NCBI GenBank assembly: GCA_021613535.1
Contig: CP075494.1
Location: 4,526,001-4,590,000, forward strand
DNA: 64,000 nucleotides
From: Adineta vaga
Lineage: Eukaryota > Animalia > Rotifera
Reading direction: 5' to 3'
Positions 4,847 to 14,650 of the stretch are shown here, in pieces (position 1 is the first letter of the stretch; every line of letters starts with the position of its first letter). The translations under genes were made by a program, and so were the position numbers. Under the pieces are notes generated by a model, which saw only the letters and a program-made list of their open reading frames with translations, ran no database searches and had not been told where the DNA came from.

Positions 4847-6025
4847 ATGACTTCTATTCTCAGTCGTAGACTTTTATCTTATAAAAATATTCGTATTATT
4901 TATGTAATAGTGGTAATCACTATTCTGACAAAAATCATTAGTTTTTGTTCGTATATCGAAAATTTTATTCGTGTATGACTCATATTCTTTTTTCTATATA
5001 GTTCTATCAAAAAACGTGACTTCTTCTTTCCCAGCAAATTCTGAAGAAAATCTTATTTATCATAATAATGGAATTGCATATGATTATTATTCGAAAGATG
5101 AACTTCGAAAAGCACAAATCGGTTATCAATGGAAGATTTGGTCACTTCCACATAATGTCAAATATCATCAGATATCTCCATTTACTCGATCAAAACTTTC
5201 GTATGTTGATATAATTTATATCATGACCAGTTCACGGTTGATTGAACGACAACAACATTTGAAAAAAGTCTTTCATCGACAAGGAATTTCCATGGAATCA
5301 GTCCATTGGAGGATGAAATGGAATCAAACAACATATAATTCTTCTCGTTCCTATGTTTATCAACGACTTAATCTCAAAGATAAACCATTAGGTAGGCTAT
5401 CGAACTCGAACTCATTCACATTCATATAAACTGAACATTCTTAGATCGAAATCAACAACGACGATGTCCAATAACAATGGAACATGTTGATGTTTGGTAT
5501 GAAATAGCGAAGGAAAAGATTCGTCTAGCATTAATTCTCGAAGATGATGTGATATTTGTTCCATTTTTCAAAGAGAAATTTCTTCGCATGATTTCCACAG
5601 CTATTCATGTGGGCGCATTACAATTGAATCGAACATGTGTCGAACGAAGAGAAGGACATATATCAAAGGATGAACGGATCGAACAAAATCCTATGTTTGT
5701 GATTGGTTCATGTTTTCATTTGCATGATGAATATTTTCGACAATCTTCATCCAATGCTTTTCCATTACTATCAACACAAAAAATGAATGCATCTAGATGT
5801 ACACATGCTTATCTCTTGACATCATGTTCAGCTCAAGCACTGGTAGAACAAATTCATAAGCAAAAGAATGACTTTGTTAATTCTGATTTCTTTCAAAATC
5901 ATTTATTTCGATTATCATCAACACTTCAGTCGTTTTGGATAGATCCCCCATTAGCTTATCAAGGAAATCAAATAGTTGATCATGATCAGATCAAAAGTTT
6001 TCAAGGTCAAACACAAAACGAATAA
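4847..6025 (+). CDS. Glycosyltransferase family 25-like protein (3 exons)
   Basis: ALILEDDV and CTHAYLLT motifs with an N-terminal TM. Intron 5392-5444 (GTAGGC...TTAG) joins ORFs 4971-5429 and 5477-6025 in frame. A first intron is probable at 4941-5001. Confidence 0.75.
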
Positions 6026-6048: not shown

Positions 6049-8335
6049 TTATTCAATTTTTTTTACACATACATTGTTTCTATAGTATTGAATTGTCTTT
6101 TGAATTCCTATGGAAAGTGAAGTCATTTGAAACGATGGAAAAATTCTTTTGAATTCCGAAGTATCAGCAGTACGACGTAATGGACCATCTTTATTCATAT
6201 CATTATCGAATTGAATCGATCCATTGTAATTTGCATGATGACATATAAGTTGAACAATATCAGCAACAGAGACTTCTTCACCTGCTACAATTAAAGGTTG
6301 TTGTTCATTATAATTTTCTAATGTCCATAAAACAATTTCAGCAAGATCTTGTGCAAACATAATTTGTCGTAAGGGTTTACCTGTTCCAATCATTTGTAAA
6401 GGAATGGATAAATCTTGTTTCTTTTGATTTTCTATTTTTGCAATCAATGCATTTACAAGTGGCGCTGTATTTGGATTGAAATCTCCATAAGCACCAAAGA
6501 AATTCCCTGGTAAAATCGTAACAAAATTACATTGATATTCTTTTCGATACCATTCTGTAAGTTGTGCTAATGATCGTTTAGCATATGCATAGGATTCCGA
6601 TGCTGGATGAGGTAATCCATCGTAAATGGAAGACGTATCGATTGGGAATTGTGCATTTTTTGGAAGCATAACTGTTGATAAGATAGAAACTAATTTTATT
6701 TGACCAATCCATGTTTGAAATTCGAATGTTGTTTGAAGAATATTATTATTTATTGTAACATTATTAATCCAAAATTCCACTGGTTTAGCGGACATTTCTT
6801 GAATGGATGCAAGATGTGCGGCACAATGAATAACACGTGTTGGTTGAAAACGTTTGAAAATCTTTTCAACATCTTTAACTTTTCGAAGATCTCCATCTTG
6901 ACGAGTAATAAAAATCCATTCGGAATCATTTGTTTTAAGCTTTAATGGTTTGGAATCGATTATTACTGATGAATCTGATTGACCTAAGAGAACATCACGA
7001 ATATATTGACCTAACATTCCATTACTTCCTGTAATTAATGTAAAATGATATGGTGAAAATGGAAATGCTAAGATGATCTCTACAAGTTTATCAATAATGG
7101 TTTGATCAAGAGACATTTGATGAACACCAATGAAAAATCCACGTGAATGAATAACTTCTGCACCTGGATAATTTTCCGGATGTTCTTCATCACAAAATAT
7201 TGATATGCAAGGTTGACGAATAAAATTTCCGCTGATAATCGGACGATTCTCAATTCCATTTTTTTCAAGATATTTTAAAAATTCGAAACGTTGATGTGTA
7301 TAACATCGATGTAATAAAAATCCTAAACCAAACCATGCTGGATCTACATCTTCCGAAGGTTCAATCAATGACATTAATGATGAAAATCTTTCATAACGTG
7401 CAAATGTTTCTTTTATAAGACGAAAATTTTCTCGACGATTCTTATTAAATTGATAAAGTTTATCTAATTGAACATTTAACATTGCACCTTGAACTTCTAA
7501 TGGTCGAAGATTATAACCCATATTTATAAATAAAAATCGACAATCAATATCGGGATACAATTCTTCAACTTGTTGACGATTCGTTATGTGTCTAGTCCAC
7601 CCATGGGCCCGTAGACAACGAAGAAAATTATAATCTTCTTCTGTATGACATGTTATCATTCCTCCTTCACCACTTGTAATATGATGTGAAAAATAGAATG
7701 AAAATGTTCCAAAATCTCCAAATGTTCCTAACATTTTCTGTTGACAGAAACTTCCTAATGATTCGCATGTATCTTCAATTAAAATAAGTTGATGTTCTTG
7801 AACAAATTTCATTAATAATTTCATATTAATCGAATTTCCAAGAACATGAACAGCCATAACTGCTTTCACACGATTGGTTAATTTACGTTCAAGTTCATGA
7901 AGAGATATATTGAAAGTACGTGGATCAACATCGACAAAGATTGGACGAAGACCATTTTGAATTAATGGAAATACACTAGTTGACCAACAAACCGCTGGAA
8001 CAAGAACATGATCACCTGGATCACAATGTTTTGGACGTAATTTATTTGCTATTGCTGAAACGCAATAAATTAGCTGAACTACCCGAATTAACCATGACAG
8101 CATAGGATACACCAAGAATTTGTGCAAATTTCTTTTCAACATGTTCAATTTCTTTACCTAAAGTTAATCGACCAGATAATAAAACTTCAGTCATTGCTAA
8201 AATTTCTTCTTCACCAAATGGATTCATTGCTAATGGAAATAAAGTTGATGTATCTTGTTTTTCCGCTGAACGACGAGCATTCCATTCCTTTGCGATAATC
8301 ACTTTCCATATTGGTTTGTTCGTTTCACTATTCAT
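6049..8335 (-). CDS. Fusion: ColD-like PLP-dependent GDP-4-keto-6-deoxymannose 3-dehydratase + GDP-fucose-synthase-like SDR reductase (one frameshift at ~8062)
   Basis: N-domain has DegT-family motifs NSGSSANLL, EDTCESLG, FSFYFSHHITSGEGG (His in place of the Schiff-base Lys) and LRAHGWTR. C-domain has LITGSNGMLG, YAYAK and GTGKPLRQ. ORFs 8042-8353 and 6049-8148 overlap and switch frame at NLL/VSA. Confidence 0.85.
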
Positions 8336-8578
8336 GTTCACTTGATTATACAAGTCGTAATTCTTCTATGCTCTAAGATACAATTAAAATGAATGATGAA
8401 AAGAAATGTTTCTTTTTTTTCTTTCTTTGATCGATAGTTACTAATACTTCTCGATAAAATGTTGAGTAAAATTATAAAGAAATGACAAGCATACATTTCA
8501 TTTTGTGAACGCTTACAAAGGAGAGTAGAGGAAAGGAAAGAAATTACAATTACTTCGGTTAATCGATAAAAAAAGAAC
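8336..8578. promoter_or_regulatory. Short divergent (bidirectional) intergenic region
   Basis: ~240 bp between the head-to-head start codons of the dehydratase-reductase and transporter-GT genes. Promoter function is inferred from position only. Confidence 0.5.
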
Positions 8579-10927
8579 ATGTGCTATCAAAATTTCTTCC
8601 GTTTTAATAAAAGATCTTGGCAAGAATCGAAAGCAATGATTTCATTGATAATCTATTGTCTATCTGGTACATTTCTGACTTTATTTAATAAACTTACAAT
8701 CATTCGTTTTCCCTATACAAATATTCTTTTAATTTTACAAAACACTTTCGCTGTTATTCTATTAATATTCTGTTCTCAATGTTTTCGTTCAACATTTGGA
8801 TCTCTACCACGATTAAATCGAATGGTTTTTCAAGTTTGGTTACCATTAGTTATCTTGTTTGTTCTCATGTTAATATCAAGTTTAATTGCATTAATCTATG
8901 TTAGTGTACCAACAGTTATTGTCATGAGAAATTTAACAACTTTATTTGTTTCACTTCTTGAATATTTGTTTCTAAAACATAAAACAACACGTTTTTCTCT
9001 TGTGATATTAATTGGCATGTTATGTGCTGCAATACTCTATGCAAAACATGATTTTACATTTAATATTCGCGGTTATATTTGGTTAGGTGTGAATATTCTT
9101 AGTACAAGTATTTATCAGATTTATATTAAGAAAATTATTCATTTGGTTTATTTTGAAAATATTGGATCGATTGGAATGTCGTATTATAATAATTTATTAT
9201 CTTTACCTTTACTTTGGATAATTGCATGTGGAACAGGAGAATTCAAGAGATTAATCATGGATTCTAATTATGAAATGATTTCGATTCTTTTAATAATTAT
9301 TTCAAGTATTCTTGGCTTTTTATTAAGTATATCGGCATTTACTTTAAACAAATTAATATCTGCAACTTCAATGATGGTTGCTAATAATGTGAACAAATTC
9401 TCTGTTATTCTCCTCAGCGAACTATTTATTAAATCAACTCTTGATCTAGTTGCTTCTATTGGTGCAATATCCGTTCTTTGTCTTGGATGGTTATATTCTC
9501 AAACAACAAAATCAACATTAAAAACAATCTGTCTTATCATTACTATTCTTTTGATGATCTTAGGTGCAATTATTGAATACAAATATACTAAAACTACCGA
9601 AGATTATTATAGTCAATTTCAACCGATTATTTTCAATAAAACAATATTACGCCGATCTCTAAATACTCAGCAAGGAAATGAAATTTATCAATCATATCTT
9701 CCCATATCCAAGAAATCCTATCATATATCTCATCCTAAAATTGATATACGACATGTTCAAAACTATTCTCTTCCACAAAATTGTCGAAATCGAAATGCAT
9801 CGATATGGAAAACATGTGATATTCGTTCTTGTCAACCTTATACTCGTCTACCGAAATGGAATTATCCCCAACAAACAATTTTGCAAGAAAAAACTGATGA
9901 ATTTATTCATCATCTATTAGAAATAGCTTGGGGTAGAAATCCACCTTGGATTGATTTATATTTACGTAGTAGTTGTAATGGTATTATGGAAATGCAATAT
10001 CTTCTTGAAAGTATCAAACTTTTTTGGCCAAGATTTTTAGGTTCTATTATCATTGTTCTTGATGTAAATGATGAGAAAATTTTAAAATATATCTTACCGA
10101 ATCAACCAACACATCATTATATCATTAGTTTTGAACATACACCTTGTTTACCTGGACGAATTTTTAATCAATATAGTTATTTAAATCTTGATCGACATTC
10201 ACATGCTGATTATATTTTAACAGTTGACAGTGATTGTATATTTCATTCACCAGTGACACCGGATTTAATTTTTCGTGATGGAAAAATTATTTTATCGTCA
10301 TCACAAACATTTCAACGAGATCTCTGGTTAAAACCATTGGAAGCTATTATGGGCCTGGGAATGTATGAACGACATTATATGGTAACACAACCAGTGACTT
10401 TTGCTCGATCAACCTTTTCATCATTTCGAAAATGGTTTTGTCAAACGAAAGGACAATGTTATGAAGATCAGCTTACACAATTATTACCAAAATATTATCA
10501 AGAATTTTGTTGGATGTGTCAACTTGGTACTTATTTAGAACGAGGACATGTAGAGAAAAGTGAATATGATACATATTGGTATCAACATTTAGATGATCCA
10601 TCATTAAAACCAATATTACGATATGCAATTCATATTCCATATGAACCATTTAATACAACACAATGTCGAGAGGTATTATGTTATGAGAAAACAGCAAATG
10701 AAATTATTAAGCAAGGATTATGTCGAGCATTTGGTCCATCAATATTTCAATTTTGTATGAATTATAAACATTTTAATTATATAAATAATGTCACATTTTC
10801 TTATGCCCAATTCGAAATTCAAGCAGCAGAAAAATCTGAACGAATCAATGTATTAAATGATTATTTAAAACGTTTAGCAAATGTAACAATGATGGCTTAT
10901 GATTTTAAGAATGTAGGACAATGTTAG
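8579..10927 (+). CDS. Fusion: SLC35/GONST-like GDP-sugar transporter + GT-A-fold glycosyltransferase-like domain
   Basis: ~10 TM segments with RNLTT, SYYNNLLSLP (cf. Vrg4 FYNN) and SATSMMVANNVNK (cf. GALNK/GVVNK). An extra TM follows, then a soluble Cys-rich domain with a DXD motif (YILTVDSDCIF). Intronless. Confidence 0.8.
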   Translation: MCYQNFFRFNKRSWQESKAMISLIIYCLSGTFLTLFNKLTIIRFPYTNILLILQNTFAVILLIFCSQCFRSTFGSLPRLNRMVFQVWLPLVILFVLMLISSLIALIYVSVPTVIVMRNLTTLFVSLLEYLFLKHKTTRFSLVILIGMLCAAILYAKHDFTFNIRGYIWLGVNILSTSIYQIYIKKIIHLVYFENIGSIGMSYYNNLLSLPLLWIIACGTGEFKRLIMDSNYEMISILLIIISSILGFLLSISAFTLNKLISATSMMVANNVNKFSVILLSELFIKSTLDLVASIGAISVLCLGWLYSQTTKSTLKTICLIITILLMILGAIIEYKYTKTTEDYYSQFQPIIFNKTILRRSLNTQQGNEIYQSYLPISKKSYHISHPKIDIRHVQNYSLPQNCRNRNASIWKTCDIRSCQPYTRLPKWNYPQQTILQEKTDEFIHHLLEIAWGRNPPWIDLYLRSSCNGIMEMQYLLESIKLFWPRFLGSIIIVLDVNDEKILKYILPNQPTHHYIISFEHTPCLPGRIFNQYSYLNLDRHSHADYILTVDSDCIFHSPVTPDLIFRDGKIILSSSQTFQRDLWLKPLEAIMGLGMYERHYMVTQPVTFARSTFSSFRKWFCQTKGQCYEDQLTQLLPKYYQEFCWMCQLGTYLERGHVEKSEYDTYWYQHLDDPSLKPILRYAIHIPYEPFNTTQCREVLCYEKTANEIIKQGLCRAFGPSIFQFCMNYKHFNYINNVTFSYAQFEIQAAEKSERINVLNDYLKRLANVTMMAYDFKNVGQC

Positions 10928-11597: not shown

Positions 11598-12367
11598 CTA
11601 AATTGTATTGATTGATCTAGTATGAACAAGTGCTTCACAAGATGATTTGAGTGTTGCTAATTCATTGGTTAATTGATCAACTCGAGTAATCAGTTGTTGA
11701 TTTTCATTGATTAACATAGTCATTTTCAATGCTTTTAATTTTTTGTCTTCTTTATCTTTTTCTCGAGTTCTTTTTACTGCTCGATTATTTTTCAATCGTC
11801 GATGATGATATTCTTCAGAATATTTAATCACTTTCTTATTTCCAAATCGAGTCCATTGTAAAGAAGAATCGGAATTTAGTCCAGAATCATTCGACGTTGA
11901 ATCTGTCGAAACGATTATCGTATCGTTAGTGATCGAGCTAGTTACAGTTTCATAATTTTGGATTAATATTGAGTGGCATTGATTGTCGAATATATCTACG
12001 TGAGAACTGGATAATTTTTCAAAAGAATTGGGAATATTTGAAGTAACGGATGAGTCATGTAATTCTTCATTGGTCAAAACAAAATCATCAAGTGATGTAA
12101 AAAGTTCATTTTCTTCAAAACTATTTGAATCGCATGATAATGAATCGATCAATAAGTCAGTAGATGATTCGGTTGTTGCTGATTTCGTTGATGTGTTTGG
12201 AGAAAGGACATTGATAGATGTCATCCTTGTTAGCGAGATGTCCATATTGAGTATCTAAAAGATAAATATAAGGTCTGTTCTCTTGAAATGATATACTTTA
12301 ATGCCAGACTTACCGGATCCTTTAAAGAACCCTTTTCGGTGTTTATTATTTGTTGATCGTGAGACAT
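11598..12367 (-). CDS. C/EBP-like bZIP transcription factor (2 exons)
   Basis: Basic region KYSEEYHHRRLKNNRAVKRTREK followed by a leucine zipper. Phase-0 intron 12255-12313 (GTAAGT...TTTAG) joins exon MSHDQQ...KDP. Confidence 0.85.
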
Positions 12368-12671: not shown

Positions 12672-13057
12672 CATATAGAAAATGAAGAAGGATGGTTCAG
12701 ACATGAGTTATTATTGATTCTGATGTTAGATCAAATACATATAACTAAAAATATGTGTATAATTCTAATCACACAGATATTAAGTAAGAATGACAATAAT
12801 TTCAATTTACAGTTTATTTCGATAAATCATAAAATTATTCAAATTTTCACTAACAACCATGGAGAAATCATTTGAGTTCGTACAATCTATGAAACGAGGA
12901 TGATCATGCAAGATCGAAGAGTCGAAACGAAAAACAAAAAGAAAACAACGTTACCATCAGTAGCTCTCTACTTTTCTTATCACATTAACACTGTAGAAAT
13001 AATTGATAAGAAAAGTTGACATACTTTGCAATCATTACATTTCGTCGTTATACATCG

Positions 13058-14650
13058 ATGATGTCGAAGTATTTTTCATTTTTTATTTTCATTTCTCTTC
13101 TATTTGTATCATCTTCATCGGATTCGATTTTATCAGAAAAAGAATTGAAATTAATTCGCTATCTATCCTATTTAACACATCTTCAAACAACATCAACAAC
13201 CAATATTACTTGGAATGGTTGGGAAAAAAATTACGATGGTCCTCAACTTGGTTTAGATTCGATTCGATATCCTCTCGCTCATATCGGTTACACCGCTGCA
13301 GCTTTAGCATATCGAACGCCGAACTATCGTGAATTAGCTTTAAATATTTTAAATGATACCATAAAACGTATGTTAACTATACAAGTATGGGGATATATCG
13401 ATCAATATTGGAAGAAAACATCGACATTTCCAGATCCTGTTTATTATGAAAATATTATGTATAGTGGACATCTTTTACAATTAATAACATTATATGAAAG
13501 TATTTCTGGAGATTTTATCTATGATACACAAGGCTTTGATTTCATTTGGAATAAAGATGGACAATCTGTAACTAAAATTCATTATACAACAACACAACTT
13601 GCTTATGTTATTTATCGTCAAATGAATGAAGAATCTTCAGCAGGTGTTTCATGTGAACCAGGATGGGTCTATACAATTTGTCAAAATCATCCACATCTTG
13701 GTTTAAAACTCTATGATATCGTTCGTAATAGTACTACAACATTTTCACAAATATCATCAAAATGGAAAGATTTTCTCAATCATCATGCACTCGAAGATAT
13801 TCCATTGTATAAAAAAGATCGATATTTTAAAATGTTATATCAACGTTCTACTCATATTTGGGTACCATTTTTTGCTGCGACAGGTAATGATGGATGGGCA
13901 TTAGCGTGGATGTCATCTTGGTACGATCAAAATCAAACATCAAATTTTATCTGCAATGGATGGGAAGTAATGTATAAGAATAAATATTGGATAGTGTCGA
14001 AAAATCATAGTTTATCCAGTTGTTACCTCGAAGCGGGTGGTTATATTGGTGTTCGAATGCAAATGAATCGTTGGATAGCAACATCATTTTATCCCATTGT
14101 TGAAAAGCAATGTTCAACAACGAAGACAGAAAAATTAACATGTGCTTATTCATGGTTTGAAAATGATTTCGGATTGTTAGTAGATACAGATCATGATGGA
14201 TATTTCGAATCGTTTTACTATGAAACCAATACAGTTTATTCGAATTGGGTTACCACAAATGTTTTATTGTCATTGTTAATGGGAGAGAACGGAGATGAGA
14301 CAAGAGAATTTTTAAGAAAAATTTATACAACAAAATTTCATGAAAAATTTCTTAATGATGAACCAGAAATTTTAGCTGTTCAATATCCATCAGTACGTGT
14401 TACACGGGCACAATATGATTCGAACACAAAACTATTAATTCTTAATTTCAACACAGAGAAACCAATGATTTTATCAACACAATTCGATTTAAGATATCCA
14501 TATTCATTTTTAACTATTTCAAATATGACACGTGATGGTACACGTGATGGATTTACATCAAAACAGATAGCCAACAATAGAATAAGAATTGAATATTCTT
14601 ATAATACTTTGGAAAGACAAAATACAGAATTTCATATATTATTTCATTAA
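13058..14650 (+). CDS. Linalool dehydratase/isomerase-like secreted protein
   Basis: Signal peptide. IRYPLAHIGY, ENIMYSGHLLQLITLYE and SCEPGWVYTICQNH match the LinD family, including both Cys of the CEP...C motif. Intronless. Confidence 0.75.
   Translation: MMSKYFSFFIFISLLFVSSSSDSILSEKELKLIRYLSYLTHLQTTSTTNITWNGWEKNYDGPQLGLDSIRYPLAHIGYTAAALAYRTPNYRELALNILNDTIKRMLTIQVWGYIDQYWKKTSTFPDPVYYENIMYSGHLLQLITLYESISGDFIYDTQGFDFIWNKDGQSVTKIHYTTTQLAYVIYRQMNEESSAGVSCEPGWVYTICQNHPHLGLKLYDIVRNSTTTFSQISSKWKDFLNHHALEDIPLYKKDRYFKMLYQRSTHIWVPFFAATGNDGWALAWMSSWYDQNQTSNFICNGWEVMYKNKYWIVSKNHSLSSCYLEAGGYIGVRMQMNRWIATSFYPIVEKQCSTTKTEKLTCAYSWFENDFGLLVDTDHDGYFESFYYETNTVYSNWVTTNVLLSLLMGENGDETREFLRKIYTTKFHEKFLNDEPEILAVQYPSVRVTRAQYDSNTKLLILNFNTEKPMILSTQFDLRYPYSFLTISNMTRDGTRDGFTSKQIANNRIRIEYSYNTLERQNTEFHILFH

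Follow-up and report, generated by a model that had tools for sequence, protein, structure and literature searches.

Can a nucleotide-sugar transporter and the enzyme that uses its cargo be made as one polypeptide, and if so, which sugar would such a protein handle? This question is raised by a gene in a 64,000-nucleotide stretch of the genome of the rotifer Adineta vaga (GenBank assembly GCA_021613535.1, contig CP075494.1, positions 4,526,001 to 4,590,000; hereafter the window). A single uninterrupted 782-codon open reading frame (ORF) at 8579..10927 (+) joins an SLC35-type transporter, an eleventh transmembrane (TM) helix, a stem and a domain resembling the GT-A fold of glycosyltransferases (GTs). 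From sequence comparison and structure modelling we propose, with a probability of about 0.6, that the product is a bifunctional membrane protein of the Golgi or endoplasmic reticulum that imports a guanosine diphosphate (GDP)-linked sugar and attaches it in the lumen, and that the likeliest cargo is the 3,6-dideoxyhexose of its divergently transcribed neighbour.

A conserved fusion of transporter and enzyme domain

According to the ORF list, the frame starts with the ATG at 8579 and ends with the stop at 10927 on the plus strand, and encodes 782 amino acids (aa). From the N-terminus to the C-terminus, the product consists of the transporter (residues 19-307), a hydrophobic helix (314-333), a stem (334-439) and the GT-A-like C-terminal domain (440-780; hereafter the C-domain). 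All of the elements that an initial annotation of this DNA, made from the letters alone, had described in one uninterrupted ORF (a ten-TM domain, an extra helix, a stem and a DXD motif) were located there. At the G+C content of the window (30.7%), the chance of 782 stop-free codons is ~2e-28, and because the whole architecture is also conserved, a chance ORF was rejected. An artefact of the gene model was rejected as well, since the raw frame is open in two A. vaga paralogues and in many species.

Proteins of 791 aa from A. ricciae are 70% identical to the product across 98% of its length. The A. vaga assembly contains exactly two genes of the transporter subfamily and exactly two of the C-domain family, and both are fused. 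The second fusion is an uninterrupted 795-aa ORF on another chromosome (G000:C3:19144357-19146744 (-), which is L002:1486-3873); it shares 43% identity with the window gene in the transporter and 59% in the C-domain, and carries the motifs FYYNN and INNMNK. The NCBI protein for this C3 copy (I4U23_016904; P0038, 364 aa) comprises the C-domain only, the public model having missed the transporter half. Fusions from metagenomes are 770-840 aa in length and 50-61% identical to the window protein, and distant fusions on GC-rich, eukaryote-like contigs (P0021, P0022, P0060, P0067 and P0077) show the same order of parts at 34-39% identity. In both A. vaga copies, as in more than 20 orthologues with identities as low as 34%, no stop codon interrupts the frame across TM11 and the stem. 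By these comparisons, the fusion gene is real and conserved. Full-text literature searches returned no description of a natural transporter-transferase fusion.

Apparent fission products were found in another bdelloid-like genome (ENA ERZ25069412). One, P0212, is a transporter gene in which TM11 is followed by a short tail rich in sequons, and the following 5 kb contains no called C-domain ORF; the other is a C-domain gene with relic TM10/TM11, directly downstream of a long terminal repeat retrotransposon (P0037). Such derivatives suggest an ancestral fusion in bdelloids whose halves are able to work apart.

The transporter keeps the guanine motif and carries an altered sugar motif

The N-terminal domain (residues 19-307; 8633..9499 (+)) belongs to the SLC35/TPT group by its match to Pfam TPT (PF03151), which reached 32.2 bits against a cut-off of 30. 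In a PDB search, its sole solved relatives were GDP-mannose transporters: residues 18-296 matched Candida Vrg4 (9s35, E 8e-16) and yeast Vrg4 (5oge, E 3e-13). The alignment spans Vrg4 residues 20-312, which include TM1-TM10, and TM7-TM9 align to 5oge gap-free with an offset of 16 residues. Although a plain hydropathy scan resolved just part of the ten TM helices, the AlphaFold model of the full-length protein showed helices throughout residues 11-307, so that the annotated SLC35-type ten-TM domain is borne out by the Vrg4 alignment, the TPT match and the modelled helices together. Ten TM helices is also the number given for nucleotide-sugar transporters (NSTs) in PMC13342644.

In Vrg4, as described in PMC6789118 and PMC13342644, guanine is read by (F/Y)YNN and the sugar and phosphate by GALNK with its K289, and Y28 and S266 contact the ligand. 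The fusion protein carries YYNN on TM7 (residues 202-205; 9182..9193 (+)), in alignment with the FYNN of Vrg4 (F218/Y219/N220/N221 to Y202/Y203/N204/N205); N205 is invariant and N204 is kept in at least 90% of the fusions. The motif is therefore retained, as had been claimed, but does not count as an alteration, since PMC13342644 gives YYNN as native to Candida Vrg4. Further positions correspond as S266 to S250, Y28 to Y26 and K289 to K273, while Y281 is replaced by M265 and K118 by R117. At the position of GALNK on TM9, the fusion protein has NNVNK (residues 269-273; 9383..9397 (+)), with G285/A286/L287/N288/K289 of Vrg4 corresponding to N269/N270/V271/N272/K273, and of the five motif residues only N and K are retained. 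The exchange of GALNK for NNVNK was thus found exactly at Vrg4 G285-K289, and it is family-wide: NNVNK (or NNANK, NNMNK) is common to all fusions and to many stand-alone transporters, and N270 and K273 are invariant among the aligned fusions. In these alignments NNVNK is the hallmark of a transporter subfamily and not an isolated mutation. Because GALNK is absent and the change is family-wide, the protein was not filed as a GDP-mannose transporter.

Compared with Vrg4 and GONST (SLC35, PF03151), the fusion protein thus has the same ten-TM drug/metabolite transporter fold and the same (F/Y)YNN on TM7, and keeps the Lys of the TM9 motif, the Tyr of TM1 and the Ser of TM8. It differs from Vrg4 by NNVNK in place of GALNK, Met for Y281 and Arg for K118, and by the addition of an eleventh TM helix and a predicted lumenal enzyme part of ~450 residues. 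Since the guanine-side residues are kept and the sugar-side motif is replaced, the guanine pocket appears to be retained and the sugar pocket rebuilt, and the cargo is probably other than GDP-mannose. NSTs exchange a nucleotide sugar for a nucleoside monophosphate (PMC9368800, PMC13342644), and by analogy antiport with guanosine monophosphate (GMP) is expected for the fusion protein.

An eleventh helix and stem would place the C-domain in the lumen

The eleventh TM helix (residues 314-333; 9518..9577 (+)) includes the segment TICLIITILLMILGAII (residues 316-332), which the initial annotation had singled out as an additional hydrophobic helix. It gives the second strongest hydropathy peak in the protein (2.68), it appears in the full-length AlphaFold model as a continuous helix (312-340) followed by a low-confidence segment (341-385), and a hydrophobic segment lies at this position in 21/21 aligned fusions, all of which bear out that assignment. 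The stem that follows (residues 334-439; 9578..9895 (+)) is poorly conserved, is modelled with low confidence over residues 341-385 and contains three N-x-S/T sequons; the first conserved Cys residues (402, 413 and 418) stand at its end.

In NSTs both the N- and the C-terminus are cytosolic. Beyond ten TM helices with cytosolic ends, an eleventh span would carry all that follows to the lumenal side. The stand-alone relatives of the C-domain (P0043, P0044, P0056 and P0057) have an N-terminal hydrophobic anchor or a signal peptide and then a stem, and the stand-alone C-domain genes on the contigs L017 and L019, which are described below, likewise start with an anchor or signal peptide; Golgi transferases typically begin in the same way, with a stem behind the anchor or signal peptide. 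In addition, eight Cys residues of the C-domain are invariant or nearly so, and each fusion has 2-8 N-x-S/T sequons after TM11. Taken together, the eleventh TM helix, the anchored or signal-peptide-bearing relatives, the conserved Cys and the sequons after TM11 make a lumenal C-domain the coherent reading, which supports the placement predicted earlier. A cytosolic C-domain was rejected, since neither the conserved Cys nor the signal anchors of the stand-alone relatives would fit it.

The proposal of substrate channelling, which had accompanied that placement, was overstated. The stem of ~100 residues, poorly conserved and of low confidence in the model, looks more like a tether than a device for fixed hand-off, and such tethering would probably provide co-localisation and 1:1 stoichiometry rather than a rigid channel.

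The C-domain has a GT-A fold and is distantly related to DUF6492

The C-domain (9896..10918 (+)) was analysed with an AlphaFold model of residues 400-782 (predicted local distance difference test 93.7, predicted template modelling score 0.92) and an alignment of 34 relatives. Its strand order (458-463, 490-495, 514-519 and 545-548) is that of the GT-A core. Strand 490-495 (IIIVLD) ends in the invariant D495 (10061..10063 (+)), for which the general GT-A pattern would indicate a role in nucleotide binding, and strand 514-519 ends in the invariant E519. Directly after strand 545-548 lies DSD (residues 550-552; 10226..10234 (+)), the sole D-x-D in the protein and a DXD-type site for metal and nucleotide sugar. 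D552 is invariant in the 34 relatives and D550 is found in at least 90% of them, in agreement with the DXD-containing domain of the initial annotation. The invariant H685 (10631..10633 (+)), 133 residues past the DXD, is a candidate C-terminal metal ligand by analogy with GT-A families that have a C-terminal His. D495, D552 and H685 are invariant across the C-domain relatives and the fusions.

Foldseek matched the model to GT6 blood-group transferases, GNPTAB and CpsY at E ~1e-6 with a probability of 1.00. In a second structure search independent of Foldseek (VIA, scored by Z), 79 solved chains were found at Z of at least 8, nearly all of them GT-A enzymes (GT2, 6, 8, 13, 14, 15, 27, 31 and others). 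The top four were Stealth enzymes (7s6n, Z 13.7; 7s05, Z 13.6; 7dxi, Z 13.5; and CpsY 8j2n, Z 13.2), aligned over 206-233 residues at a root-mean-square deviation (rmsd) of 3.5-4.2 and 12-14% identity. The GT15 enzymes Kre2p (11.7) and Ktr4p (11.4) came next, together with GT14 and xylosyltransferase 1 (both 11.4), and dozens more GT-A enzymes followed at Z 9-11. The GT-A fold that had been assigned to this domain thus finds agreement in AlphaFold, Foldseek and VIA. The label 'glycosyltransferase' was not established, since no GT family threshold was reached and the best structures are sugar-1-phosphate transferases.

DUF6492 was the sole Pfam family detected (20/34 members, best E 1.7e-5), and the match covers profile positions 100-210 only, the central third of the C-domain. 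No GT Pfam family was significant among the 34 members, Glycos_transf_2 appearing at E 0.056 in 3/34, and neither half of the fusion protein gave a match in NCBIfam. In the ESM Atlas, DUF6492 was the nearest named family (28/30 nearest named clusters), and a 122-member cluster of the same fold was commonest in Cnidaria. A model of a phage DUF6492 protein superposed on the C-domain core with a TM-score of 0.89 and an rmsd of 2.2 over 235 residues. By these matches, the C-domain is a remote relative of DUF6492 which lies in no characterised GT family. DUF6492 is an uncharacterised family without known function, mostly from phages and bacteria, and a full-text literature search returned no paper mentioning it. 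Members of the eukaryotic branch have, in addition, a Cys-rich extension at the N-terminus and a helical subdomain of ~100 residues at the C-terminus.

An exhaustive profile search with the C-domain returned 690 representative clusters at E <=0.001, and the family was found in eukaryotes, in giant-virus-like contigs and as phage DUF6492. The domain is also fused to STELLO (P0116 and P0118) and, in a Closterium protein (P0170), to Nucleotid_trans. A pattern scan of genome contigs confirmed no prokaryotic relatives, and viral contigs yielded phage proteins only, at 20-28% identity to the C-domain. The family is therefore large and uncharacterised, and the gene cluster described below supplies a specific donor prediction for it.

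Several observations on relatives may be added. The metagenome protein P0027 has a transporter joined to a STELLO domain. In A. vaga, the STELLO-like ORFs examined on C5 at ~13.47 Mb carried no transporter domain. By its gene content, the contig of P0056 (JGI 3300050821) resembles a giant virus: a stand-alone C-domain relative lies on it among tightly packed PolB, Skp1, ankyrin and GT15 genes. At L006:7989-9385, a phage gene that passes the DUF6492 cut-off lies immediately upstream of a gene for an FkbM-type methyltransferase, and the pair is possibly a small sugar-modification module.

A neighbouring gene points to a 3,6-dideoxyhexose

The divergent neighbour of the fusion gene (6049..8353 (-), two exons) encodes a DegT-type 3-dehydratase fused to a GDP-fucose-synthase-like reductase, as indicated by Pfam and NCBIfam. 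Its DegT domain has a His at the position of the Lys that binds pyridoxal phosphate (PLP) (SFYFSHHITSGEGG), and its best NCBIfam matches are RfbH and GDP-L-fucose synthase, both below their equivalog cut-offs. A pair of 3-dehydratase and reductase, as in ColD and ColC, is the enzyme logic of GDP-3,6-dideoxyhexose synthesis, and from its domains the neighbour gene probably makes the rare sugar. A. vaga has a single copy of this gene. Between the two genes lies an AT-rich spacer of 225 bp (8354..8578), which may serve both as a shared promoter region.

The same functions were found together on three other contigs. In L004, the dehydratase and the reductase are separate genes, with 59.5% and 42.5% identity to the neighbour, and the transporter and C-domain are fused (P0021). 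In L017 and L019, the dehydratase and reductase are fused and divergent as in the window (52% and 55% identity, each over ~690 aa), and the transporter and the C-domain are separate adjacent genes. L017 has a stand-alone ten-TM NNVNK transporter and a C-domain gene with a signal peptide (E 4e-79), whereas L019 has a stand-alone NNVNK transporter, a C-domain gene (E 8e-78) and a second copy of the C-domain. Since the three functions occur together in four independent contexts with varied fusion states, the NNVNK transporter and the C-domain appear to be tied to the product of the neighbour. Such co-occurrence is the classical pattern of functionally linked proteins, and it provides the strongest functional argument among these sequence comparisons. 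The L017 and L019 regions (L017:4735-11510 and L019:7006-16419) are gene-dense contigs of ~57% GC with methyltransferase and GT90 genes nearby, and their proteins carry poly-Q and poly-T/S tracts.

The arrangement resembles the bacterial O-antigen clusters for colitose and other 3,6-dideoxyhexoses (ColD/ColC, RfbH). Both have a PLP-type 3-dehydratase with His for Lys and a short-chain dehydrogenase/reductase of the GDP-fucose-synthase type, and in both the synthesis genes are clustered with a transferase. Unlike the bacterial clusters, the eukaryotic version needs import into the secretory pathway, and this requirement would account for a dedicated SLC35 transporter in the cluster, fused to the transferase in some lineages.

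Proposed mechanism and weighing of alternatives

In the proposed mechanism, the N-terminal ten-helix antiporter of the SLC35/Vrg4 type would import a GDP-linked sugar in exchange for GMP, the cargo being a 3,6-dideoxyhexose of the colitose or tyvelose type made by the divergent neighbour. TM10 would end on the cytosolic side, and TM11 would lead the chain through the membrane once more, bringing the flexible stem and the disulfide-rich GT-A-fold domain to the lumenal side, close to where the transporter releases its cargo. There, the domain is predicted to use its DSD/His metal site to bind the GDP-sugar that has been imported and to pass the sugar to a glycan or lipid acceptor, and one small cluster would thereby make, import and attach a rare sugar. 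The analysis shows the ORF, its domains and motifs, the fold, and the conservation of both the fusion and the gene neighbourhood; we infer the topology, the identity of the sugar, the transfer of a glycosyl rather than a glycosyl-phosphate group, and any kinetic benefit. The initial annotation had proposed a GDP-linked but non-standard sugar. A GDP-linked sugar other than mannose agrees with the (F/Y)YNN that is kept, with the NNVNK seen throughout the family and with the conserved neighbourhood of genes for 3,6-dideoxyhexose-type synthesis. The overall interpretation of that annotation is supported for the fold, the lumenal side and the GDP-linked sugar; the glycosyltransferase label was not established, and channelling was overstated.

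Several findings weigh against the proposed mechanism. The top solved matches of the C-domain are phosphotransferases, not glycosyltransferases; its DUF6492 match of 19-21 bits is below the gathering threshold of PF20102 (22.9); a profile search of the C-domain against PDB sequences gave no match at E up to 10; and no C-domain residue specific for GDP could be pinpointed. The charges flanking TM11 show the expected positive-inside bias, but to a modest degree (+19 versus +9 in total for the 21 sequences), and AlphaFold confidence is low at TM9-TM10 (271-292), TM11 and the stem. No dehydratase or reductase gene was found within ~9 kb on either side of the C3 copy. Finally, the apparent separability of the halves in the fission products suggests that the channel would not be obligatory.

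As a less likely alternative, though the foremost one, the lumenal domain may be a Stealth-like hexose-1-phosphate transferase, converting GDP-sugar to sugar-1-phosphate on the acceptor plus GMP, with the architecture and topology unchanged. All four top solved matches are Stealth-type phosphotransferases, ~1.5-2 Z above the best glycosyltransferase, Kre2p; still, this gap is small, and the identity to the Stealth structures is just as low as noted above. Foldseek likewise placed GNPTAB and CpsY among its top matches, yet the Stealth_CR profiles (CR1-CR4) gave no match in the 34 members at E up to 1, and the Stealth profile PF11380 gave none in the A. vaga genome or in 14 control genomes. In Stealth enzymes, the metal is bound by DD where GT-A enzymes have DXD, and a His serves as base (PMC9388126, PMC8913297); the C-domain has DSD together with the nearly invariant H599 ahead of a strand equivalent to that of Stealth. 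The GNPTAB papers name D407/D408, H956, R986 and N1151 as key residues. R986, the strictly conserved Stealth Arg that holds the beta-phosphate and lies 30 residues past the His, has no counterpart at this spacing in the C-domain, which has Glu at residue 629; the candidate for the His of this pair is H599, and the invariant R617 and R681 lie elsewhere, in a mapping based on the published residue lists and secondary-structure order rather than superposition. By the same approximate mapping, the C-terminal ligand position is His, as in classical GT-A enzymes, and not the Asn of GNPTAB. Overall, the C-domain and the Stealth enzymes (the catalytic domain of GNPTAB and CpsY of M. tuberculosis) share a GT-A-like, membrane-anchored, lumenal or extracytoplasmic layout with an acidic pair at the DXD position, whereas the C-domain lacks the CR1-CR4 signature, has His for Asn, lacks the Arg at the Stealth spacing and probably uses GDP rather than uridine diphosphate (UDP). 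The antiport of NSTs with nucleoside monophosphates would suit phosphotransfer, since the GMP released is the counter-substrate of the fused antiporter and no lumenal GDPase would be needed. If this were true, a sugar-phosphate would be put on the glycan and the GMP exported by the same polypeptide, as a unit independent of the Golgi GDPase. A broader version of this alternative, still less probable, would make the fused domain the founding eukaryotic member of a Stealth-like but sequence-distinct group of GDP-sugar:acceptor sugar-1-phosphate transferases in a closed GDP-dideoxyhexose/GMP cycle, and would have the make-import-attach module moved as a cluster between protists, giant viruses and bdelloid rotifers.

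The cargo could also be ordinary GDP-mannose (or GDP-fucose), in which case the C-domain would be a lumenal mannosyl- or fucosyltransferase and the adjacency of the dideoxyhexose gene incidental. The sole solved relatives of the N-terminal domain, the presence of the GDP-mannose-using GT15 enzymes Kre2p and Ktr4p among the best glycosyltransferase matches, and the second A. vaga copy without an adjoining synthesis gene would agree with this. We consider it doubtful, given that GALNK is replaced throughout the subfamily, A286D within the GALNK of Vrg4 being a loss-of-function allele (PMC13342644), and that homologous dehydratase and reductase genes adjoin the transporter in four separate contexts of differing order and fusion, which is not expected by chance. 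Most improbable of all is that the ORF is not made as one protein, either because an internal promoter or processing splits it or because it is a decaying, horizontally acquired relic. The transporter-only genes with TM11 and the C-domain-only genes with relic TM10/TM11 in bdelloid assemblies, like the C-domain-only NCBI model of the second A. vaga copy, could be taken in its favour, but a poorly conserved stem in an AT-rich genome would gather stops were the join unselected, and the frame is open across it in both copies and the orthologues named above; moreover, the binding and catalytic residues of both halves are invariant.

Implications for transporter-transferase coupling

Physical coupling of transporters and transferases has been proposed to link the supply and use of nucleotide sugars in the Golgi (PMC9368800, PMC6453868), and the hints of such coupling considered in a 2022 review on the delivery of nucleotide sugars to the Golgi are all non-covalent NST-GT complexes. 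Like the mammalian complexes SLC35A2-UGT8, SLC35A2/A3-MGATs and SLC35A2-B4GalT1, the rotifer protein would couple a transporter in the Golgi membrane with a transferase that uses its cargo. The mammalian complexes are non-covalent and handle UDP-sugars, whereas in the rotifer the coupling is covalent and genetically fixed, a GDP-sugar is predicted, and the fusion needs an extra helix to solve the topology problem. Because the coupling has so far been argued from non-covalent complexes only, a natural, conserved covalent fusion, with the same parts also present as separate neighbouring genes, would offer a ready-made test system. In addition, the differing sugar pocket of the NNVNK subfamily should help with a long-standing problem, the prediction of SLC35 substrates from sequence. 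The cluster also points to 3,6-dideoxyhexose glycans in an animal, for which the precedent found in the literature is tyvelose on the N-glycans of Trichinella (PMC9100689).

Other features of the window

Convergent with the neighbour gene are two GT25-family fragments (4971..5429 (+) and 5477..6025 (+)), the second of which matches Pfam Glyco_transf_25 at E 9e-10. They may represent one more transferase of the cluster; L004, L017 and L019 showed no counterpart to them. Directly downstream of the fusion gene, a 215-aa ORF (11598-12245 (-)) with a bZIP_2 domain in its C-terminal part (E 1e-8) encodes a transcription factor of an ordinary eukaryotic kind, here amid sugar genes. Farther on, a 544-aa ORF (13016-14650 (+)) matches the linalool dehydratase/isomerase family (Pfam Ldi, E 4e-41), a bacterial-type enzyme which is unexpected in an animal genome and may be another horizontally acquired gene.

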